Sequence record: OR670491.1
Length of the DNA: 64,000 bases
Strand: one strand, 5' to 3'
The notes under the pieces are model-generated. The model saw nothing but the letters and a program-made list of their open reading frames with translations, was not told where the DNA came from and did no database searches. Below are positions 6,001 to 55,029 of the stretch, in pieces. How positions within the stretch are numbered: position 1 is the first letter of the stretch; each line of letters starts with the position of its first letter. Made by a program: the position numbers and the translations under genes.

Positions 6001-8998
6001 ATAGGATTGTACCAGTACTGCTATCACCAATGGTTCCGTCAACTGACCATAGGCCACTTGGAACATAATCACCATTTTCGTTTAGTACTAGAGCTTCATA
6101 TACAGCAACTGTATCACTTTCACGTTCACCAACCTGTACATATGTTGGTTCATACTCTTGGTTCCACCATGATGGACGTTGAGAGAATCCTAGCATTTCC
6201 CACGGATGGGTTGCTGGACGATATGTACCGTACTGATCAGTGTAAATTGCACGCCATGAACCACGAGCAGGAATATCAGATACATGACCATCAACTACAT
6301 AATTGGTTCCAGTATAGTTCCATGTTTTCCAGTTACTTTGGACATATGCATTAGTACTGTTACTAATACCGTTGGTAGCAGTAAAGTTAATGTATCCACG
6401 CAATAGTAGAGTTTGTTTCTCTGCCATCGTATAATCAGTTGTCTGGAAATACGGGGTTGGGAATAAATCTTCACTACTTAGTACTGGTTGATAATCTACA
6501 TCTTTGAATACGTTATCAATACTATCAAAAATACGAGATTCCAATTCAAACACAACATCATCCATTTTATCAACACCGTTAATTGCACGATATGATTTGG
6601 AAATAATACCAGTGTGGCTGATATTATAGAAGCTTGATTTGCTACCTGGATTTAGGTATGTAGCTTTTTGTGGTGCATAAGCTTGTAGAATACCTAAGAA
6701 TTGTGGTGTTGGTGGAACAAATGTACGAATAAAACCAGAAGTGCTTGCTACGTTGTCATAATAGAATGGGAATGAACTATCACGTCCCATGTTAATAGCA
6801 CTAAAAATTGCATCTACAATATTAGAAGCACTATTAGCAACAAAGCCACTTGGATCTTCGTCATACATACGAATCATTTGTGTATTGAATTTGTTAATGA
6901 AGCGGAAGTATTCTGCTTGCATAAACATGATAGCTTCAAACAAATCGATATCTTCGTTTGCAGTGTGAGCCATCAATGGAAGCATTGAAGCTTCGTTTTG
7001 AATAATGTGAGTACCGACACCATTATCAACCAACCCAGCAGCTAGACGTTCTTCGTAATCGTTGAAGTCATCAGATGAACCACTTGTAATATTCTTTTGA
7101 ATAATATCCTTGAAATGTAGGGTGTACATTCCTTGGTTGATATAAATGATATTACCGTTGTATGGGTTATTTTGTAAGTTGATTGGAATTTCATATGCAC
7201 CAAGATTCTTATCAGGAGTAATAGTACTGCTATAAGTTCTGATTTGAATAACTGAATCTTCATCTAGTGCAACAGTACTATCGATTGTAATACTTTGAAC
7301 TTGATTTTTGGACACGGTTTTGCTGAAGCTGTTGGTAACTACACCATCAACTGTTAGCTCAATAATGTCATCAGAATTATCAAGTACTTTCTGTGCCAAT
7401 TCAAATGTATGATTGTATTTTACACTTTGAACACCGTCGCCAGTGATAACGTGCCAATCAAGATATGTTTCTTTTTCTGCTTTGTAATATTGGTAAGTGC
7501 GATCCACTTCGATTACATAAGCATACATTCCATCAACTGGTGAACGGAAACTTTCTAGATCGTAAACAGTACTGAATACACGATACATGTCAGTACGGGT
7601 AACTTCTAGAGTTTGTTTAACGAACTGTTTGGAATATTCAGCAGAACGAACCCAGTCAGTTTTTAGGTGCATAGAATTGTCTTCACCGATGACGTTAAAA
7701 TAATACAAACCGTCAATCTCAACTTCTTCACCTAAATGATCATATGTATAACGTTCGGACTGTAGAAAGTTCTCATATGTATAATAGTTGTAATCACCTA
7801 ATTCGATGTTATAACCATATACACCATCAGTTGGATAGTTGTAGTTGATTTTAAATCCAAATAGAGAAGAACCTTTGAAAGTACTGGATGGATAAACGGC
7901 ACTATCGTTTAGTTTATTACCATTGCGATCATATAATTGGAATTGTGGGAAAAAGTTAACTGTAGGTTTGGCTTGTGCTTGAACCCAATGTGCACCATCC
8001 CAATACATTGAACTATTACCATAGGTATTACCTTTAGTAATTAGAACCACGTCACCTTTAATTGGTTCACCACTTGGACGGTCTTCAGTTTCTTCTTCAG
8101 GATCTAATGCTAGACCATATACGCGTGTACCATCTTGTAATTTTTTAATGTATACTTTATAAATTCGGTTATTCTCACCACTGTTACCAATACTGGTGAA
8201 GAGAATGCGTTGACCATCTTGTGGGATAATCCCGTCAATACGAATACCGGAGTTCACATCTTTTTGAACCATATCTTCTGGTTTGATGGTATCAGAGTAC
8301 AAATCAACTGTACCACGGAATTTAGTACCGTAGTTTAGAAGTTCGATATCTTTATTGAACTCGATAATAGGTGCTTTAGCACGAACGAAACGCTCATCCT
8401 GCATTAGATCTTGGGTTAGTACTGTACCATCCCCTAATGTTTCACCTAGAGTGTACCAGAAGTTTTGTAGGGACCATGTGTTGCCGTTAGTAGCATTACG
8501 TTCCATTACAACATAGTCTGGAGTTTGAATATTGTATTCGTTTTGTGTATCCCAAAGATATGAACTGTAGTTGTTCATTTTGTTTGGGTTAATAGCAGGT
8601 GTCCATGCGTAAAACTTACCAGCAAATAGGCGACTTTCATTATCAGTTAGTGCACCGTAATGATTCATGTAGCCAACGAGGTCATCATAAAATTGAATTG
8701 AACGAATACTGCGGTCATCATTTCTTGAGACGTAAGCAGTGGATAACTGATACAGTTGACGTGCAACTGTTGATTCAGCTAGGAAGATGTTACCTTCAGC
8801 GGCGGGAGAACCCATATCACCAATATAGCCGTCAACCAATTCGTTTTCAGCCGGATTAAACCATTGTTGAATGACATCATCACTTACCTTCTGAATGTCT
8901 TCTAGACCTTGCATCCATTCAGGTAATCTTTTGATGAAAAGTTTTTTCTGTACTGCTTCAGCCGTTTGTGTAGGTTGAAACTTAAAATTATTAGTCAT
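2..8998 (-). CDS. Giant virion structural protein (>2999 aa, probable baseplate wedge/tail component); 3' end lies beyond the left edge
   Basis: ATG at 8998 (MTNNFKFQPTQ...) with GGAG RBS and an ATAAATA late promoter at 9035-9041. The frame was spot-checked open at about 4320 (LQEWAFKIG) and at positions 2-31. It is absent from the ORF track, probably because no stop codon falls in the window. Directly downstream of the gp6-like gene. Confidence 0.75.
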   Translation of the reverse strand, partial: MTNNFKFQPTQTAEAVQKKLFIKRLPEWMQGLEDIQKVSDDVIQQWFNPAENELVDGYIGDMGSPAAEGNIFLAESTVARQLYQLSTAYVSRNDDRSIRSIQFYDDLVGYMNHYGALTDNESRLFAGKFYAWTPAINPNKMNNYSSYLWDTQNEYNIQTPDYVVMERNATNGNTWSLQNFWYTLGETLGDGTVLTQDLMQDERFVRAKAPIIEFNKDIELLNYGTKFRGTVDLYSDTIKPEDMVQKDVNSGIRIDGIIPQDGQRILFTSIGNSGENNRIYKVYIKKLQDGTRVYGLALDPEEETEDRPSGEPIKGDVVLITKGNTYGNSSMYWDGAHWVQAQAKPTVNFFPQFQLYDRNGNKLNDSAVYPSSTFKGSSLFGFKINYNYPTDGVYGYNIELGDYNYYTYENFLQSERYTYDHLGEEVEIDGLYYFNVIGEDNSMHLKTDWVRSAEYSKQFVKQTLEVTRTDMYRVFSTVYDLESFRSPVDGMYAYVIEVDRTYQYYKAEKETYLDWHVITGDGVQSVKYNHTFELAQKVLDNSDDIIELTVDGVVTNSFSKTVSKNQVQSITIDSTVALDEDSVIQIRTYSSTITPDKNLGAYEIPINLQNNPYNGNIIYINQGMYTLHFKDIIQKNITSGSSDDFNDYEERLAAGLVDNGVGTHIIQNEASMLPLMAHTANEDIDLFEAIMFMQAEYFRFINKFNTQMIRMYDEDPSGFVANSASNIVDAIFSAINMGRDSSFPFYYDNVASTSGFIRTFVPPTPQFLGILQAYAPQKATYLNPGSKSSFYNISHTGIISKSYRAINGVDKMDDVVFELESRIFDSIDNVFKDVDYQPVLSSEDLFPTPYFQTTDYTMAEKQTLLLRGYINFTATNGISNSTNAYVQSNWKTWNYTGTNYVVDGHVSDIPARGSWRAIYTDQYGTYRPATHPWEMLGFSQRPSWWNQEYEPTYVQVGERESDTVAVYEALVLNENGDYVPSGLWSVDGTIGDSSTGTILYGARKGQYDKYKRFGVQPFKITKTGSKTSTGIDICEIEYIAPEVLGLVSGSLNHRAEPWSYGDMGDMEFTYMNTAMFAYDQMLLLYKAKPAQFANYYWDTRNNSLNSVYTGQPQFLYGETRKRINFDSATVVHGENNTRTVGYQMFVSDYLAYQNKNITTKYGDVVRSSYVNVGHKIGGFTKADQLTFTAKSFGLISQENQTIGLVRSSNIRDEVISAVKITWTGSAYQIDGYDLVGAKFKYKLPVKNGKKVSLKIGTRNVAHYNEWKNESEIEYGKVFNTYQEVYTFICGYGEYLKEHGWIFEDVNDSGAQQDWNTIAKDFVTWSQSTLVSGEYISCTPSSANAKFGADFGSVQSIAQNSGGVWSLLDDQNQGIRQYEIETSRIGNVFTVRTTDDSDKRMALIRLSLCSYEHAVIFDDQTIFGDYIYQPTFGSVQELIKMYGYITGSWTGRLQAPGFIILEAGTLPSFEKLVTDFELYYNSETPVSDIQLQELSNHLIGYQTRDYLQRMIGSDANRVDFYKGFIHDKGSNQVLEKVLRVSKSYDTEEYKALQEWAFKIGTYGNVDGKKNLQFKLINDQFKQQPQLVSFDIHATSNGNGNNIVYFGEQGADPRWVTRPNGKFSFPMRSGRSENIQLPDIGPVSLDEISYITKEFSTAYDDRIQYMNKTGEIPESVWMYKDVDGLWDIFDLVDTEVKMLSITPIENNDPYAEQFCKVTLSDNIPLVDGEYYYFVDETNFMPDSLTVESQYYTAGTDPKVMVVPFDTSIDITFTDVDTQPKLYRYKSRFSTDADRQAYMDKKYSYKAPESTLFDRPTTYDDRTNVTALYLNVFDPINGVIPGVAMQNVNYTTPVDPAQYNSNGELLQAWGADKVGQVWWNTSTAYYLDYTRPIFDADGVVDVEATNEYKRYNWGKLLPHSKIDVLEWVCSPVEPYNWETYCKDMAKKNKNNTMYLPSGTALEDNYSAFLEYDSATDSYVTKYYFWVRDTIYVPPLHTRTKSCTDIARIIEEPAQLNIPWFAPINESSFILSNMQFEVNDDTSVLTISYYMDNTEVVKHDQYQLCKEGDSYNFNSAIWDSMWNSLRGQETTESGSVIDLLYPAVDNGLGSNKTWFQDVIEARRTFVDSANDFYRSQNMTTNTVVMAEVFNVKTTEVNPNEVAFRVLSYNSELVIAPESDKFKENDAVLVSTSGSLPTPLTTSSVYFVHIDANGYIHLMNSPSSAGSIVTITLENRGEGQHKMIKHADFEESLGTSLDMTQYWNLADWYDEGYSSTTSYTQEDSLDDANAKNYQIGDVIRVTDSDGIWTLYIKAESRESIYWKAIGRENSTIELNDMLYADYTVRTESGSLSNREINVRKALALLKNSFDLHQSTIVFDMVKYVHVEQGVVDWVFKTSYIYIIGLEQSLVQNYSNDNLINQIVEYFEEVKPYRTKIRSQIEQKTSDDDVIKGLCNDLDPNGYILVDGSWVKTEKDIWDYEYAQFSDVTQRWEQIGSLPSDFVTPNRRFQEIDVIMHYDNIQCKPNEDLASLDVLNAVNNKYQSNEKDVVSDFELQRFIYTFPENNSETLDLQVAYQMQILYPSMNITMGAAKAINDWYKENSDNLALTEEFTQNLHRIYAEATNNEVFDDVKHYVQYNTLSNRLKLYTGASNEVIHDEVGCGFSGVTFTDNPSTRLPFGFASSTDYNLGYYEVSSELYKKYVDLIKTANPAFSDEEVRIELEVEYGVYMYKFMEEQTIQDEDGEEVVIEVRRYYTDAVHVLTGMRNLFNKDASNNYEIAEEVLSNNSVQNYAFTMIPRKYVYAKVNDTFVSIPRNQSIDDFIEDIYITTGQAVSLAEINLDDLPQDVNNPMYSDYKQILDGIEGAKYYNDMNSFDNLALESQTATMKWSVQDDEVDPYIIDIRDVNPAERDIGQIRVTIDGYGFDTAAQVQLRDNSRLHVEGMVLINPYNYGQAIISIPSYAKVSNDISATTDKYDEKYFYQVKSVQTQSQMKLVDNSLANGDK

Positions 8999-21152: not shown

Positions 21153-22170
21153 TAAACTGATTACATTTACTGACATTCATCTAGGATTGAAGAATAACAG
21201 TAAGCAACACAATGAAGATTGTTTAAACTTTATCCGCTTCATGATAAAGATTGCCAAAGAAAAGGGCATTACTAAATGTGCCTTTCTTGGTGATTACTTC
21301 CATAACAGAAGTAACATTAACATTCAAACATTGAACTATGGTTTAGAAATTCTACAATTACTAAATGACAACTTTGAAAAAACATATTTCTTAGTTGGGA
21401 ACCACGATATGTATCATAAAAATAAACGTGACATTACGAGTATCAATATGGCACAGGTTTATGAGAACATCGAGTTCATTAATGAGATTACTACAATCGA
21501 TGATTGTACTTTCATTCCATTTATGATTGAAGATGAATACAAACTACTACCACAACTTAAAAGTAAGTATGTTTTCGGACACCTTGAGTTGCCTGGATAC
21601 ATGCTTAACAAGATGGTTGAAATGCCAGATCATGGCAAAGAGACAGAAGGTTCATTTAGTGGGTGTGAATATGTTTTTAGTGGACACTTTCATAAGCGTC
21701 AATCTAAAATCACCCCTAAAGGTACTCGCGTAATTTATACTGGTAACTGTTTTCCGCATAATTTCTCTGACACTTGGGATGATGCTAGAGGTGTGATGAT
21801 TTTAGAACACGGAATGGAACCAATTTTCCAAACGTGGTCTGAAGCACCTAAGTATAGAACATTTACTCTTTCAGAATTACTAACCGACCCTAGTTTCTAT
21901 CTTCAAGATAATACTATTTCAAAGATTCAGGTTGATATCCAAATCACTACTGATGAGATTAGTTTTATCCGTGATACTTTTACTAAACTGTATAACATTC
22001 GTGAGTTTAACGTTGTTACCAGTAAGCAAAGTATTAAGGAATTACTTGAAGAAGGTGAAAGTTTTGAAAGTACTGAATCAGTTGATGATATTGTTATGCA
22101 ACAAATCATGGAAATTGATTCACCTATGTTCGATAAAAATCTCCTAATTCAAATTTATAGATCATTATAA
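21139..22170 (+). CDS. gp47: Recombination endonuclease subunit, Mre11/SbcD-like
   Basis: Metallophosphoesterase motifs FTDIHLG, FLGDYFH, VGNHD, FSGHFH. Confidence 0.92.
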   Translation: MALFDKLITFTDIHLGLKNNSKQHNEDCLNFIRFMIKIAKEKGITKCAFLGDYFHNRSNINIQTLNYGLEILQLLNDNFEKTYFLVGNHDMYHKNKRDITSINMAQVYENIEFINEITTIDDCTFIPFMIEDEYKLLPQLKSKYVFGHLELPGYMLNKMVEMPDHGKETEGSFSGCEYVFSGHFHKRQSKITPKGTRVIYTGNCFPHNFSDTWDDARGVMILEHGMEPIFQTWSEAPKYRTFTLSELLTDPSFYLQDNTISKIQVDIQITTDEISFIRDTFTKLYNIREFNVVTSKQSIKELLEEGESFESTESVDDIVMQQIMEIDSPMFDKNLLIQIYRSL

Positions 22171-22179
22171 GGAAATTCT

Positions 22180-24327
22180 GTGCTAAACATTACAAGTATA
22201 TCGATGAGAAACTTCTTCTCCTTTGGGAATGCACCACAAGTTATTGAAATGAATGGTGCTGATATCTCCCTAGTGCTAGGACAAAACAACGATGCAGTTA
22301 TTGAAGGTGGCGACAGTTCTGGTCGCCGTAATGGTGTAGGTAAAAGTGCCATTATACAAGGTTTAGTATATGGTTTGTTTGGCAAAAGTATTGGTAATGA
22401 TATTAAAATTCCAAACTTAGTTAATAAAACTAATGCTAAGAACTGTGAAGTAATCGTTGAGTTCGAAAAGGATGGGGTAAATTATAGAGTTGAACGTGGT
22501 AGAAGTCCTACTTACTTTAACTTTATTACTGTAGGAACTGATAATACAGTTACAGACGAATCAAGGGGTGAAAAGAAAGATACCCAAGAAGATCTAAATG
22601 AGATTTTGGGTATTTCTCAACTCCTGTTCGAACATATTGTAGTACTGAATGCTAACGTAGAACCATTTTTGGCATTAGGTGCTCAACGTCAACGTGATAT
22701 GATCGAAGAACTCCTTGGGATTACACAATTGACTGAAAAAGCTGAACTACTTAAGGATATGAACAAAGAATCCAAGCGTTTAGCAGAACAAGAGAAGTTT
22801 AAGAACGAAACAGTTGCTGCTAGTAATGAACGTATACAGAAAAGTATCGAATCATTGCAGGAACAAGCAAATAACTTCGAAATCGAGAAGTCAAAACGTG
22901 TTGAAAGTCTGGAAAGTGAGATTAGTTTGTATAGTACTGTTAACTTTGAGGATTTGTACAAAGCTGCTGCTCTTAATGAAGAAGCAATTGCTCATAACCT
23001 TAATATTGACAATCTATCCATCCGAGTACAAGATCTGGCTTCTAAATTTGAGACATACAATGCCGATTTAGAACGTAACAAAAGTATTCTTGCTCAAAAT
23101 ATCGATAATCTAAAGAACATTGATATTAATGCGGAGTTAAAGAGTCATGAAGAACTGGAAATGTGGAAACAATTAGATACTATTCTAAAAGAGAACAATA
23201 ACCAAAAGCGTTTCAAAGAACAGAAGTTAAATTCATTGAAAGCTAACCTTCAAACTTATAAAACTTCGTTTAGTGCAGAAGATAACAAACGTATTGAGTT
23301 GGAAAAGAGTAAATGTCCAACGTGTTTGACTACACTTGAACATAATGAACACACAATGTCATTGAAAGCTAAAATTCAAGAGACTATTGATTCATTACAT
23401 CTGAAAATTGATGAATGTACTCGTGAAATTGAGCAAGTAGAAGGTGAAATTGGTGCTATTGAGATCTTCGATATGCCACCTAAACCTATTACTCATTACA
23501 ATACGTTGACTGAAGCACAAATGCATGAACATAAGCTTCAAGAGTTGCAGAAAAAGTATGATGAGGTTCCAATTAATATCTATCAAGAAGAGTTGATGAA
23601 CTCCTATGATACTTTGAACTCATTAGTTCGTAAAGAAGTATCCGAGTCATTGACTCAATCAGAAGTAAGAGAGATTGAATTGGCTTATAACTCATTAAAA
23701 CAACAACTGGAACGTGAATTAGCAACGACTAATACTTTTATTAGTCAAATTAACACGCTTACTCAAGATTCACTTGTTGCAATCGATTATTCCGATTATA
23801 ATAACTTAGATAAGTTGGCTAATCACCAAGATTTCTTAGTTAAGCTGCTTCTCAATAAAGATTCATATGTTCGTAAACGTATCATTGAACAAAATATCTC
23901 ATATCTGAACAACCGTCTTCAGTACTACATCGAAATGTGTGGTTCAGAGCATAGCGTTGTGTTCCTTAACGATCTAAGCGTTGAGATTGAGAAAAGTGGT
24001 CAATACTTTGACTATAAACAATTAAGTCGTGGGGAAAGAACAAGGGTTAACATTGCGTTATCTTGTGCATTCCGTGATACTTATGAGTCTCTATATCAAA
24101 GTATTAACATTCTGATTATCGATGAGATGATTGACCAAGGTCTAGATTCAAGTGGTGTTCTTCGTGTGTGGTCTATCTTCCAAGATATGTCTGCTGTACG
24201 TGGTAAAAACGTATATGCAATTTCACACAGAGAAGAGTTGCTTTCTAAGACTGAAAAAATCCTTAAAGTAGTAAAAGAATACGGTTTCAGTACTGTTGAA
24301 TATACTACTCTGGATGATGTATTCTAA
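22180..24327 (+). CDS. gp46: Recombination ATPase subunit, Rad50/SbcC-like
   Basis: Walker A NGVGKS, coiled coil, CPTC zinc hook, LSRGE signature, IIDE Walker B. Confidence 0.92.
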   Translation: MLNITSISMRNFFSFGNAPQVIEMNGADISLVLGQNNDAVIEGGDSSGRRNGVGKSAIIQGLVYGLFGKSIGNDIKIPNLVNKTNAKNCEVIVEFEKDGVNYRVERGRSPTYFNFITVGTDNTVTDESRGEKKDTQEDLNEILGISQLLFEHIVVLNANVEPFLALGAQRQRDMIEELLGITQLTEKAELLKDMNKESKRLAEQEKFKNETVAASNERIQKSIESLQEQANNFEIEKSKRVESLESEISLYSTVNFEDLYKAAALNEEAIAHNLNIDNLSIRVQDLASKFETYNADLERNKSILAQNIDNLKNIDINAELKSHEELEMWKQLDTILKENNNQKRFKEQKLNSLKANLQTYKTSFSAEDNKRIELEKSKCPTCLTTLEHNEHTMSLKAKIQETIDSLHLKIDECTREIEQVEGEIGAIEIFDMPPKPITHYNTLTEAQMHEHKLQELQKKYDEVPINIYQEELMNSYDTLNSLVRKEVSESLTQSEVREIELAYNSLKQQLERELATTNTFISQINTLTQDSLVAIDYSDYNNLDKLANHQDFLVKLLLNKDSYVRKRIIEQNISYLNNRLQYYIEMCGSEHSVVFLNDLSVEIEKSGQYFDYKQLSRGERTRVNIALSCAFRDTYESLYQSINILIIDEMIDQGLDSSGVLRVWSIFQDMSAVRGKNVYAISHREELLSKTEKILKVVKEYGFSTVEYTTLDDVF

Positions 24328-24333
24328 TAACAC

Positions 24334-24359
24334 AAAAGGGAGCCTTAGCTCCCTTTTTT
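24334..24359. terminator. Bidirectional terminator between convergent gp46 and endonuclease VII genes
   Basis: AAAAGGGAGC-CTTA-GCTCCCTTTTTT. Confidence 0.75.
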
Positions 24360-24836
24360 CACATGCAACATATTTAATTTACCTTCCTTGATAAGCTTCC
24401 TAGCTTGCTTTACACGAGCAGCATTGTTAGCACCAGGGATGATATCGTACTCTTCCAGAATAGCGTTCTGTTGGGCTGCTGGGAGCCTTTTAAACTTACC
24501 TACATCAACTGCTAAAGCAGTGTGGTGTATAATCTGTTCCTCTTCAGGGATGCTATTATTTTTCTCTAAATAGTCTGCAAGATTACGCAGTACTTCGTAT
24601 AGGGGTTTATCAGTTAAGTGCTTCATATAGCGATTAAAGCTGTTCTGAACCTTTCCTTCCCATGCGTTCACTTCATTCTGGAGTACTTCACGACAGTGTT
24701 GATTCTCGAAGTGATAGTGATCCAGTACTGGTTTAGTGATAGTTTCTTTGATGATAGGATCTATACCTTTTTGTTTTTTAAGTAATTCATTTCGATAGTT
24801 TGCAGCGTCTTTACTATCTTTCAATCTTCGTTTCAT
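24345..24836 (-). CDS. gp49: Recombination endonuclease VII-like Holliday junction resolvase (His-Me finger)
   Basis: QKGIDPII...PVLDHYH...CREVLQNEVNAWEGK matches endo VII (LDHDH...RGLLC..CN..EG), although the Zn-ligand cysteines are partly lost. Confidence 0.65.
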   Translation of the reverse strand: MKRRLKDSKDAANYRNELLKKQKGIDPIIKETITKPVLDHYHFENQHCREVLQNEVNAWEGKVQNSFNRYMKHLTDKPLYEVLRNLADYLEKNNSIPEEEQIIHHTALAVDVGKFKRLPAAQQNAILEEYDIIPGANNAARVKQARKLIKEGKLNMLHVKKGS

Positions 24837-24929
24837 AAATCCCCTCTTAACTAATTCCTATTGAAATATTTATGCGTTAGTTTTCAGTGCAGGAACTAAG
24901 TACTTTTTCATAAAAAAATCACATAATAC

Positions 24930-24958
24930 TGAGACACTTTTAAAAAATGTGCTATAAT
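24930..24958 (+). promoter_or_regulatory. Early/middle-type promoter TGAGAC-N14-TGCTATAAT pointing into the non-coding island
   Basis: Matches the recurrent promoter class; no credible ORF follows. Confidence 0.7.
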
Positions 24959-24960
24959 GT

Positions 24961-25414
24961 TTATTGTAGTAATGACAATCCTGTTGAATGCAGAAATGCA
25001 TATAAATTAGAACCTGATCCTATCGAAAACGTAGATGGCAGATGAGCAGTTCAACAGTGCGATGAGCAAAAGAAACCCGTCAGATGTGGGCATAGTTTGA
25101 ACCCCTCACGGCAATGCGGCTCAATAAAGAACTCCGATAAGATACAGAGAGTTCCTCGATAGACATATAAGGTAAATTCCTTACCAGATTATCTAAGGGA
25201 GTTTTTGATTTATTTCAAAAACAGCTTGAAGTTTGATTGTATAGACTTTCAAGTGAGTGTCAGGATGTTTAAGACTGACGACCGTTGCATATGACTGCGA
25301 TAGAGAGAAACAGAGCAACCCGCTTTCGTTCTTAATTAATTAAGAAATTCGCAATACAATAATTCCGATGCCATCAGCGTCAAGATTAAGAGACTTCATT
25401 GTCTCTTTTTTATT
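24961..25414 (+). ncRNA. Putative structured non-coding RNA of about 450 nt, family unknown
   Basis: Promoter immediately upstream; terminator-like hairpin with T-run at 25388-25414; many helices (see findings); no ORF with RBS. Confidence 0.55.
25388..25414 (+). terminator. Terminator-like hairpin closing the putative ncRNA
   Basis: AAGAGAC-TTCATT-GTCTCTT followed by TTTTATT. Confidence 0.55.
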
Positions 25415-25613
25415 ATCTTCATTCCCCTGCGGGGGGATGAAATATCCTCAACAAATCCCGTCAAGTATTAAATCATTTAAAGTTCTTTATAATTATATTA
25501 AAATGAATATGAGTTACGTCAGTAACGAATATTCTTCAGCTAACGAATGAAATGAGTTAGATGAGTTCAATATAATCCTTCTAGTATAATTCAAATCATC
25601 ATAATTTAGATAC

Positions 25614-25638
25614 AAAAAAAACCAGCAATAGATGCTGG
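25614..25638 (-). terminator. Terminator for the minus-strand baseplate hub genes
   Basis: CCAGCA-ATAGA-TGCTGG hairpin with an A-run on its left. Confidence 0.65.
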
Positions 25639-25650
25639 CTTAGTAGTGAG

Positions 25651-25863
25651 TTACTGCTTCCCGTTGAGTTTTTTAATTTTCTTATTAAATGACTTAACTA
25701 ATAAATTCCTGTCAATTACTGGCATATTAAGGAGTGTTCCGTAGTCAATATTTTCCATATTCACAGCACACTCCATAAGTGCTTCTTTGATCTCTTTTTT
25801 ATTCAGTTCTATTTCCTTCAAAAATTCTTGAATTTCTTCTGGAGTTGACTGGAGAAGCGTCAT
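25651..25863 (-). CDS. Small baseplate hub assembly protein (gp51-like position)
   Basis: 70 aa, overlaps the stop of the gp26-like gene; IDYGTLLNMPVIDRNLL resembles tail assembly chaperone C-termini. Confidence 0.45.
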   Translation of the reverse strand: MTLLQSTPEEIQEFLKEIELNKKEIKEALMECAVNMENIDYGTLLNMPVIDRNLLVKSFNKKIKKLNGKQ

Positions 25864-26696
25864 GCGAAAAAATGACTAGGGTCATACTTGAGTCCTTCAA
25901 TTTCCCATTGATGAGAACACTCACTGCATTCAACTTCCATAGTATGAGAAATACCTACTTCAAGTACTTCATCCATTTTTTCTTTGATTACTTTAATAAC
26001 TGCTTTGGATTGTTGTCCTAACCATTCTACAATGAATTCCTTTTCAGTTACTTCATCCCCGTCAGGAGTAATAATTTTGTTAATGACTCCAGCGATCATA
26101 TCGAAGTTCAACTGTGCCATCTTTTCAAAGATCTCACCAAATAGTTTAATTTTCTCTTCTTCTTCAATACCAGCACCTTCTAAGTACTTACTTTTCTGCT
26201 GTTCTGCGAACATACGTTCAGCAAAGTCAGAGTATTCCTTCCAAGTCAAAGGACGAAACTCCAAAGTAAGTCCGTTATCTAGGTTGACAGTCGGTACTTC
26301 TTCGAATACACTAGCAGTCTCAAGTAGGAAACTTAAGTCACGTTCAAAACGTCCTTCTTTGTGACATTCAGGACATTCAACGTTGACATCATAAGTAGTT
26401 TCTTTAGATGCTACTTTAATTGCGATAAGAAGTTGCTCAATGTCGTTGACATACAATCCATCTGCATCTATAATGTTTGGTACGCAGTTCTCGATAACAC
26501 GGGATACAGATTCACCACTCAAAAGCATGTCAGGGGTGTTAAGTGTCATCTCATCACGAGCACTACGAGCACAAATGCCACATTTTACGCTTTTACTACC
26601 GAGAACACCTTCACTGTAAGGGATCACGGCATTACTGATTAGTTTAGTACTAAGTTCTTCAATTTTAGTGTATTTTGCTAATGGGTTCATAGCCAT
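25860..26696 (-). CDS. gp26: Baseplate hub subunit, gp26-like
   Basis: MNPLAKY..., ARDEMTLNTPDMLLSG..VIENCVP, DIEQLLIAIKVAS, CPEC and CSEC Zn motifs; ATAAATA at 26735-26741. Confidence 0.75.
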   Translation of the reverse strand: MAMNPLAKYTKIEELSTKLISNAVIPYSEGVLGSKSVKCGICARSARDEMTLNTPDMLLSGESVSRVIENCVPNIIDADGLYVNDIEQLLIAIKVASKETTYDVNVECPECHKEGRFERDLSFLLETASVFEEVPTVNLDNGLTLEFRPLTWKEYSDFAERMFAEQQKSKYLEGAGIEEEEKIKLFGEIFEKMAQLNFDMIAGVINKIITPDGDEVTEKEFIVEWLGQQSKAVIKVIKEKMDEVLEVGISHTMEVECSECSHQWEIEGLKYDPSHFFA

Positions 26697-53936: not shown

Positions 53937-55004
53937 ATGCAAACTCTAGCTGAAATTCGTGCAAAACTAAAAGCGGAACAAGAAAAAGCAGAAGCTCAAA
54001 AGAATGGTACTTTTACTGGTGAACGTAAAGCCGATTCTTTCCTAGCTTTCTGGAACGTTCCTTATAACGAACCACTAAACCTACGTTTTCTTCCAGATGC
54101 AGATGAAAGCAACCCTTTCTTCTGGCGTGAACGTGATATGATTAACCTGACTTTCCAAGGTGTAGTAGGTCTTCACACTGATAAAGTTACCGTACAAGTA
54201 CCTTGTAACGAAATGTGGGTTCCTAAATCATGTCCAGTACTGAAAGAAGTTCGTCAATGGTTCCAAAGTGCGAATGAATCTGGTGATGAAGAACTGAAAG
54301 CTATGGCTGGTCGTTACTGGAAAAAGAAAACCTATCTAATGCAATGTTTCATCGCTCCTGATAGTGTTGCAGTAAAAGATGACATGGCTCCAGAAAACCC
54401 AATTCGTCGTATTCTAGCTAACAAAGATATTTTCGATAAAGTAAAATCTATTCTACTGAATCCTGGTATCAAAGAACTACCAACTCACTACACTCATGGT
54501 CGTGACTTCGGTATTGTTAAGACTAAGAACGGCGGCGGTTACAACAGCTACGATATGTCTCAATTCTCCATGTCCGAGCGTGAACTAAACGCAGACGAAA
54601 TGGCAGCTATTGAAAAATATGGTCTATACAATCTAAATGATTTTATGCCTAAACAACCAACTCCAGAAGAACTAACAGCAATCGCTGAAATGTTCGAAGC
54701 TTCTGTAAATGGTGAAGCATATGATCCAGCACGTTGGGCTTTCGCATACCGTCCAGCAGGTGTTCAAAAACCTGTAACTGGTGGTTCTGCTCCAGCAGCA
54801 CAACCTGCTCCACAAGCTCCAGCAACACCACAACCTGCTCCACAGGCAGCGGTACAGGAATCTACTCCTGTTACTCCAACTGCTCCTGTTACCCCAGCAG
54901 CACAACCTGCTCCAACTGCTCCAGCATCAACTGGTACTGAAGCACCAAAAGAACAACTATCTGCATCTGCTCTAGTTGCTCGTTTGAAGCAACAAAGCAA
55001 GTAA
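53937..55004 (+). CDS. gp32: Single-stranded DNA-binding protein, gp32-like
   Basis: LRFLPD, FFW.ER, CPVL..VRQWF, YWKKKTY, GRDF..KT..GGYNSYD.S.F. Confidence 0.88.
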   Translation: MQTLAEIRAKLKAEQEKAEAQKNGTFTGERKADSFLAFWNVPYNEPLNLRFLPDADESNPFFWRERDMINLTFQGVVGLHTDKVTVQVPCNEMWVPKSCPVLKEVRQWFQSANESGDEELKAMAGRYWKKKTYLMQCFIAPDSVAVKDDMAPENPIRRILANKDIFDKVKSILLNPGIKELPTHYTHGRDFGIVKTKNGGGYNSYDMSQFSMSERELNADEMAAIEKYGLYNLNDFMPKQPTPEELTAIAEMFEASVNGEAYDPARWAFAYRPAGVQKPVTGGSAPAAQPAPQAPATPQPAPQAAVQESTPVTPTAPVTPAAQPAPTAPASTGTEAPKEQLSASALVARLKQQSK

Positions 55005-55029
55005 TAATTTAGATACAAAAAAAGATATA

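Follow-up and report, generated by a model that had tools for sequence, protein, structure and literature searches.

Covariation supports a new family of large pseudoknotted non-coding RNAs in RaK2/121Q-like jumbo phages and enterobacterial islands

Results

An RNA gene in the JNE01 genome

The DNA analysed here, a window of 64,000 nucleotides, comes from Escherichia phage vB_EcoM_JNE01 (OR670491.1, Asteriusvirus, 355,583 bp), and positions refer to this window (record position minus 124,000) unless stated otherwise. Between an endonuclease VII-like gene and two convergent minus-strand genes lies an 814-nt gap (24837–25650), which holds the RNA gene that we call copy C (Table 1). In agreement with the original prediction, made from this sequence alone, an ORF scan identifies the gap as the sole real ORF-free stretch of at least 300 nt within the window, the remaining ones lying beneath a giant ORF that leaves the window at its left end. 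The element was also expected to be richer in GC than its surroundings, and it is (39–42% versus 33–36% in the flanks). The terminator of the convergent genes forms the right-hand limit of the locus. An exact 20-nt repeat, found at 25601–25620 and again at 55004–55023, overlaps the A-run and the 5′ edge of this terminator and probably serves the phage as a recurring terminator module.

The promoter proposed to point into the gap is borne out: it is of the sigma-70 type and TG-extended, and the layout TGRRACA...TGnTATAAT/TATACT stands upstream of every paralogue, phage relative and island copy of the element described below. Transcription would start near 24964. The conserved unit of copy C runs on the plus strand from 24931 to about 25590, which corresponds to an RNA of approximately 500–650 nt. 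At the extreme 5′ end of the leader, directly past the -10 element, copy A of JNE01 (8101–8128 of the record) and copy A of phage 121Q carry a strong terminator-like hairpin followed by U8.

Table 1 Features of the copy C locus and of the proposed RNA fold (window coordinates).
Feature	Position	Strand	Remarks
Endonuclease VII-like gene	24345–24836	-	Left neighbour of the gap
GenBank CDS WOL22777.1, hypothetical protein	24870–25001	-	Overlaps promoter and leader
Promoter	24931–24957	+	-35-like GAGACA 24931–36, 16-nt spacer, TG-extended -10 TATAAT 24952–57 (TGTGCTATAAT 24947–57); 10 of 12 consensus matches
5′ leader	24964–25011	+	PK5a CTGTTGAA 24981–88; variable hairpin ATGCAGAAATGCAT 24988–25001; conserved ATAAATTAGA
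5′ domain	25012–25200	+	Helices 89–100% paired, most pairs covary
H1	25014–41	+	5′ domain
H2	25046–60	+	Loop TTCAACAG 25050–57 is PK5b
H3 (TGAGC/GCTCA)	25063–67/25119–23	+	Covariation
H4	25077–25111	+	5′ domain
H5 (GAACTC/GAGTTC)	25129–54	+	Covariation
H6	25168–83	+	5′ domain
Invariant AAGGGAG	25195–25201	+	
H7, hypervariable hairpin (TTTTGA/TCAAAA)	25201–25222	+	
3′ domain	25223–25360	+	Covariation; covariance model R1 scores copy C 123.5 bits
H8 (CTTGAAG/CTTTCAAG)	25223–54	+	Covariation
H9 (GTCAG/CTGAC)	25258–80	+	Covariation
Invariant GACCGT	25280–85	+	
H10	25296–300/25349–53	+	
H11	25303–27	+	
H12, 18-nt palindrome hairpin	25329–46	+	Covariation
PK1	ATTGTA 25236–41 with TACAAT 25355–60	+	99.7% paired, 6 of 6 pairs covary
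PK2	GTTGC 25284–88 with GCAAC 25315–19	+	100% paired
PK3	ATG 25114–16 with CAT 25164–66	+	G-C to A-U in 8 sequences
PK4	H5 loop AGAT 25140–43 with ATCT 25191–94	+	
PK5	Leader CTGTTGAA 24981–88 with H2 loop TTCAACAG 25050–57	+	84.5% paired, 7 of 8 pairs compensated
Strand X (GATG)	25367–70	+	Pairs with CGTC of seg1
seg1, direct-repeat segment (ATCAGCGTCAA / AUCAGCGUCAA)	25373–83	+	
Terminator-like hairpin GAGAC/GTCTC	25390–25412	+	Followed by TTTTTTA; consensus scan (hairpin and T-run 25388–25412)
H13 hairpin	25418–41	+	Nearly invariant 3′ strand GGGGGGAUG; 91% paired, many G-U
GenBank CDS WOL22778.1, hypothetical protein	25437–25550	+	Overlaps H13, tail and extension
Conserved tail (AACAAATCCCGTCAAG / AACAAAUCCCGUCAAG)	25450–65	+	Holds seg2
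seg2, direct repeat of seg1 (ATCCCGTCAA / AUCCCGUCAA)	25455–64	+	
3′ extension	25466–25590	+	AT-rich linker, GAATAT/ATATTC around hairpin GTTACGTCAGTAAC, then a further hairpin
Intrinsic terminator of the convergent genes (70-aa ORF, baseplate-hub-like gene)	25619–25641	-	Consensus scan
70-aa ORF, then baseplate-hub-like gene	25651–26696	-	Right neighbours of the gap

Covariation supports a pseudoknotted fold on the plus strand

The folding energy of the single sequence shows a modest gain over shuffled controls (z = −2.4 on the plus strand and −3.7 on the minus strand), which is weak taken alone and does not choose the strand. The element is conserved in relatives, in which covariation was examined. 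A first alignment of 14 sequences had compensatory changes in 42 of 73 pairs. For the alignment of 53 non-redundant sequences (A3), an all-against-all scan recovers the helices together with several crossing interactions, and a model of 106 pairs in 21 helices is 92.6% paired, as compared to 40–44% when the 3′ partner is slid by one to three columns. Compensatory changes occur in 71 of the 106 pairs, the covariation score is 0.437 versus 0.06–0.10 in the slid controls, and none of 500 shuffles reaches the observed values. Covariation between related sequences is thus the decisive support for a structured RNA, and it shows a predicted fold in which some 14 helices are linked through no fewer than five pseudoknots or long-range helices that covary.

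Many of the complementary segments singled out by eye in the original prediction reappear in this model. Helices H3, H5, H8 and H9 and the 18-nt palindrome, which forms hairpin H12, are all confirmed by covariation; the pairings CTGTTGAA/TTCAACAG and GTTGC/GCAAC are confirmed as well, as pseudoknots (PK5, which reaches into the H2 loop, and PK2). Within the 5′ domain, the G155-C221 pair is replaced by A-U in 8 of the 53 sequences. Two proposals have to be replaced: the ends of the RNA do not pair through TTATTGTA/TACAATAA, the TACAAT segment being engaged in PK1 instead, and the register proposed as GGTAA/TTACC is in fact a conserved TAAG/CTTA helix. The TTTTGA/TCAAAA pairing stands in part, since hairpin H7 is seen by eye in other copies, but its base is unsupported, with 12% paired in the column count.

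Insertions of 40–150 nt enlarge H7 in other copies, and a UACAAUAUAG..CGUC module recurs among them. Depending on the copy, some 20 nt composed of UACAAUAUAG and then UUGUAUC or AUCCGUC are inserted at one of two peripheral hairpin tips, either that of H7 (columns ~355–395) or that of H12 (~545–565). This insert behaves like a movable tertiary-contact module.

We assign the RNA to the plus strand because G-U pairs are frequent among the 53 sequences (for instance UG:42, GU:49 and GU:33) and would read as C-A on the other strand. No conserved open frame was found: stops occur in all three plus-strand frames, and of 870 indel runs just 185 have a length divisible by three, without bias towards such lengths. 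Because of the covariation and these non-periodic indels, the two hypothetical proteins that GenBank places at the locus, WOL22777.1 and WOL22778.1, are probably spurious annotations.

The 3′ boundary and the concerted direct repeats

The RNA had been expected to measure about 450 nt and to end at 25414, closed by a hairpin and T-run. Roughly half of the 53 representatives do have the terminator-like hairpin, with compensatory changes, but about half of the family, JNE01 copies A and D among them, lacks it, and conserved pairing continues 3′ of it, so that the fold needs sequence farther downstream. In the extension, of about 120 nt, UGAAUUGA...CGAAAAUUC enclose a hairpin that is followed by a second one, and the whole is conserved and compensated between phage and island copies. 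After the element, copies A and D have no terminator ahead of the next co-directional gene, and copies B and C have the internal one only.

Two direct repeats, seg1 and seg2, flank the terminator hairpin and H13 and change in concert. Columns 612:704 of A3 are U:U in 36 sequences and C:C in 17 with zero exceptions, the C:C state being scattered over several separate clades of the tree, and columns 621:712 are G:G in 25 and A:A in 24. In RaK2, C to G and G to U changes are each present in both segments. In a subfamily that we term variant 2, CGUCA has become CGAAG in both repeats and strand X has changed from GAUG to UUCG, and this joint change implies that X can pair with either repeat. Pairing with X accounts for only 4–5 of the concerted positions, and a search across the whole transcript found no consistent third partner for seg1 and seg2 beyond X. 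An alternative pairing of the tail, GAUGAG/CUCGUC, was rejected, as column 33 varies between A and U with no compensation. RNAalifold pairs the tail with GGG 25197–99 and TGA 25043–45; the putative closing helices LR1 and LR2 (UGA/UCA and GGG/CYC) are unproven because they are invariant or vary on one side only.

Four copies in JNE01 and distribution among jumbo phages

The original prediction saw a stand-alone single gene. A whole-genome search instead finds exactly four co-oriented copies in JNE01, each in an intergenic gap: copies A (8.1 kb of the record), B (64.0 kb) and D (267.0 kb), which are 69–71% identical to C, and copy C itself. BLAST against phage genomes detects homologues in 72 phage records of RaK2/121Q-like jumbo phages, most of them with the RNA in 4–5 places and the RaK2/K64-1-like ones with about two, as partial matches. 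Identity drops to ~69% in other genera (GAP32, CBB, BF, fHe-Yen9, 7t3/Munch and XbC2), RaK2/K64-1 being partial only. A degenerate 28-nt pattern of the most conserved block retrieves 62 metagenome, 36 IMG/VR and 8 bacterial-assembly loci, and nhmmer collects 96 full-length copies, 69 of them with distinct cores. An uncultured contig of ~349 kb also carries copies. The 5′ domain has diverged strongly in the GC-richer variant 2, found on metagenome contigs L045, L082, L063, L039, L065 and L072, which retains the 3′ domain along with H13, tail and extension.

Copy C is syntenic across genera and, like its orthologues in GAP32 and 7t3, aims into convergent genes and is bounded by a terminator. Despite this synteny, the four JNE01 paralogues cluster together in the tree of the 53-sequence alignment and not with their syntenic counterparts in other genera, which suggests concerted evolution or gene conversion between paralogues inside one genome. 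No partner protein consistently adjoins the RNA copies. Searching for related loci with the neighbouring hub-like protein as query returned 121Q only.

Copies in integrative islands of enterobacteria

The family also extends to bacteria. Full-length copies are present in the Serratia fonticola chromosome, Enterobacter chinensis, Silvania, Buttiauxella, Serratia sp. and an Enterobacteriaceae isolate, and two of 5,426 complete E. coli genomes contain the RNA; among 72,556 plasmids searched, none does. The bacterial copies sit in small (~12 kb) integrase-bearing integrative islands of the chromosome, have the same promoter type and 3′ extension as the phage copies, converge on a cI-like gene and group in the tree with the copies from the uncultured ~349 kb contig.

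In Buttiauxella, the ~12 kb island (L125 5930–17551, a MAG) lies between ytfL and msrA. It encodes, in order, a tyrosine integrase, the RNA gene on the same strand, a convergent cI-like S24 repressor and a Ner/Cro-like regulator, further on a 286-aa helical protein, an LprI-like protein and an invertase, and last a defence-type cargo (nSTAND3, AbiGi and DUF4238). The island of E. coli LR-29-1 (L127 2959–13303) adjoins ffs and carries DUF4326, DUF488 and a dual-OB protein as defence-type cargo; downstream of its RNA gene lies a protein distantly homologous to that of 286 aa (size range 257–286 aa). In related islands a large serine recombinase replaces the tyrosine integrase; the integrases are interchangeable, and the RNA is the only constant part found. 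No replication protein is recognisable in the RNA-carrying islands. The 286-aa protein has N-terminal hydrophobic helices that are probably membrane-spanning and no match in Pfam, NCBIfam or PDB; AlphaFold, given the single sequence, models it as all-helical at low confidence (pLDDT 65).

Comparison with known RNAs

As originally stated, the element shows no tRNA, tmRNA, RNase P or group I/II signature. Rfam 15 yields zero matches in the window at gathering thresholds (RNase P, tmRNA, group I/II introns, 6S, GOLLD, ROOL, OLE, HEARO, c4 and ribozymes included) and, at permissive E up to 10, chance-level matches only, outside the core; the island copies gave the same outcome, and ARAGORN reports no tRNA or tmRNA gene in the window. 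Three resemblances were considered and rejected: in a hammerhead-like CAGAUGAG...CGA and in RNase P CR-I/CR-V the key positions are variable or have other pairing partners, and variants of the tail no longer have the 11 nt that are complementary to E. coli tmRNA. The searchable literature, comprising genome papers on the phage group and large-scale screens for structured RNAs of phages, contains no description of the RNA and no expression data for the phage group. Anonymous short candidates in one screen may include fragments of it (PMC10690425).

Transcripts without ORFs have been reported in PA5oct, a relative of the 121Q/RaK2 group, where RNA-seq detected four such plus-strand RNAs of 236–619 nt, two of which make up 1–5% of phage reads in the sampled phases (PMC7318152). 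They lie at 8263–8498, 21951–22401, 103065–103368 and 246116–246734 of MK797984.1. Two of them, ncRNA001 and ncRNA002, were considered as homologues and discarded, as nhmmer and covariance model R1 find nothing there.

Taken together, covariation, G-U pairs, non-periodic indels and the lack of an Rfam match strongly support the original proposal of an undescribed, large structured phage RNA with its own promoter, and the comparative data firmly indicate a new family of large pseudoknotted non-coding RNA. Its nearest kind is the ornate RNAs ROOL and GOLLD (RF03087 and RF01998; cryo-EM in PMC12286853), a resemblance in kind only. Like these, the JNE01 RNA exceeds 400 nt, has many covarying pseudoknots and invariant junction nucleotides, is encoded by phages and integrated, prophage-like elements, and is independently transcribed, as predicted here from the promoter. 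It differs from them in having no sequence or structure homology, in its hosts (here Enterobacteriaceae jumbo myoviruses), in its 4–5 paralogues per genome, and in an optional internal terminator flanked by concerted direct repeats. The frequent adjacency to tRNA genes that marks ornate RNAs is found neither in the window nor in the JNE01 genome, whose tRNA cluster (246–254 kb) is distant from all four copies.

Discussion

The original prediction suggested a scaffold, sponge, decoy or structured replication primer as possible roles. Our best guess for the function, tentative and held at a little under an even chance, is a trans-acting, compactly folded “ornate” RNA. Host RNA polymerase would transcribe the gene early, and a leaky internal terminator would give rise to a short (~450 nt) and a long (~600–650 nt) isoform. 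By pairing with strand X, either repeat could close the fold in its 3′ part. Once folded, the RNA might act in trans as a stable particle, possibly multimeric by analogy with ROOL and GOLLD, that would bind or sequester a macromolecule of the host or the phage, and the four gene copies would supply dosage. The size of the RNA, the density of its pseudoknots and its invariant unpaired nucleotides recall trans-acting and ribozyme RNAs rather than leaders; bacterial RNAs known to exceed 400 nt are RNase P, tmRNA, OLE, ROOL and GOLLD. Copy C, the GAP32 and 7t3 copies and those of the islands are moreover discrete units that face convergent genes. On the other hand, copies A and D precede co-directional genes without a terminator, where a leader or processing of a polycistronic transcript would be possible, a consistently adjoining partner protein is missing, and X explains the concerted repeats only partly.

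Alternatively, the promoter and the folded RNA could give rise to a primer or R-loop where AT-rich DNA lies just 3′ of the tail, in the manner of ColE1 or T4. The phage would then have 4–5 dispersed, co-oriented origins, and islands, having copied the element, would depend on an infecting jumbo phage for replication and subsequent packaging. The four JNE01 copies are dispersed and co-oriented at 8, 64, 149 and 267 kb of 355 kb, the promoter belongs to the conserved unit, conserved hairpins come after the AT-rich linker past the tail, an RNase HI is annotated in the phage genome, and the islands have no recognisable replication protein. ColE1 RNA II and T4 oriF/oriG are likewise promoter-driven RNAs of ~500 nt whose folding could govern events at the 3′ end; T4 has several promoter-dependent origins, dispersed over its genome, and RNA II has a G-rich element that the invariant G-run here recalls, as a lead only. 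Nevertheless, we regard an origin transcript as unlikely. The JNE01 family is far more conserved and pseudoknotted than these RNAs, known origin transcripts being without five conserved pseudoknots and ~80 invariant positions, and it is absent from the plasmids searched; the internal terminator would abort a primer, and the 3′ extension itself has compensatory changes of the RNA type. There is also no inflection of GC skew at any copy, a weak argument as skew here follows transcription.

A third possibility, which we consider improbable, is a cis-acting leader, in which the nascent RNA would modify the polymerase by put-like antitermination, or act as a large attenuator, and so gate passage beyond the internal terminator into long downstream gene arrays. 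About half of the family carries an intrinsic terminator inside the conserved unit, copies A, B and D stand in front of long arrays of co-directional genes, no terminator following the element, and the ability of X to pair with either of two identical segments around the terminator follows a logic of alternative pairing. HK022 put, P4 CI and P1 C4 are phage or satellite RNAs that act around terminators, and in the P4 and P1 systems direct repeats pair with one common sequence. However, these RNAs measure 70–80 nt, and known RNA antiterminators (HK022 put, EAR) 70–120 nt, unlike the JNE01 family, which gives no Rfam c4 match and in which, as opposed to P4 and P1, most concerted repeat positions have no partner found. 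Copies A and D keep the whole fold without the terminator, copy C and the island copies face convergent genes, and seg2 cannot control the internal terminator because it is transcribed after it.

It is very improbable that the RNA is self-processing or serves as a template, with the repeats as equivalent substrates of the internal guide X for cleavage or ligation, or as homology for template switching. This would fit the way in which seg1 and seg2 covary in identity, at no fewer than four positions and in several lineages independently, the covariation of X in variant 2 and the many invariant unpaired nucleotides, but no reverse transcriptase or other polymerase lies nearby, no ribozyme family matches, and the length of the repeat-flanked segment varies widely. 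Finally, a degenerate or unannotated protein-coding region, in favour of which stand the two GenBank annotations, can be dismissed as a next to negligible prospect given the interrupted frames and non-periodic indels, the compensatory base-pair changes throughout the region and the lack of any annotation at the locus in most related records.

To our knowledge, few bacterial or phage RNAs above 400 nt are this dense in tertiary pairing (rRNA, RNase P, tmRNA, group I/II introns, OLE, GOLLD, ROOL and HEARO), and several of these turned out to be catalytic or architecturally unusual. It is conceivable, though we think it rather doubtful, that the present family is a new large ribozyme or RNA-only assembly, or a replication-origin RNA copied by defence-carrying islands for their amplification and spread by jumbo phages. 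If so, the concerted repeats would mark an undescribed mechanism, for example a two-substrate guide or template switching.

The present results remove several probably spurious “hypothetical protein” annotations and provide a new RNA family with an alignment and a predicted structure. In most genera of the RaK2/121Q group, each genome has 4–5 copies of it. E. coli phages that can be cultured (121Q, PBECO4, and Sharanji on MG1655) carry the RNA, which is thus accessible to genetics and cryo-EM. Being common to jumbo phages and to islands with anti-phage genes, it points to a function at the interface between phage, host and island.
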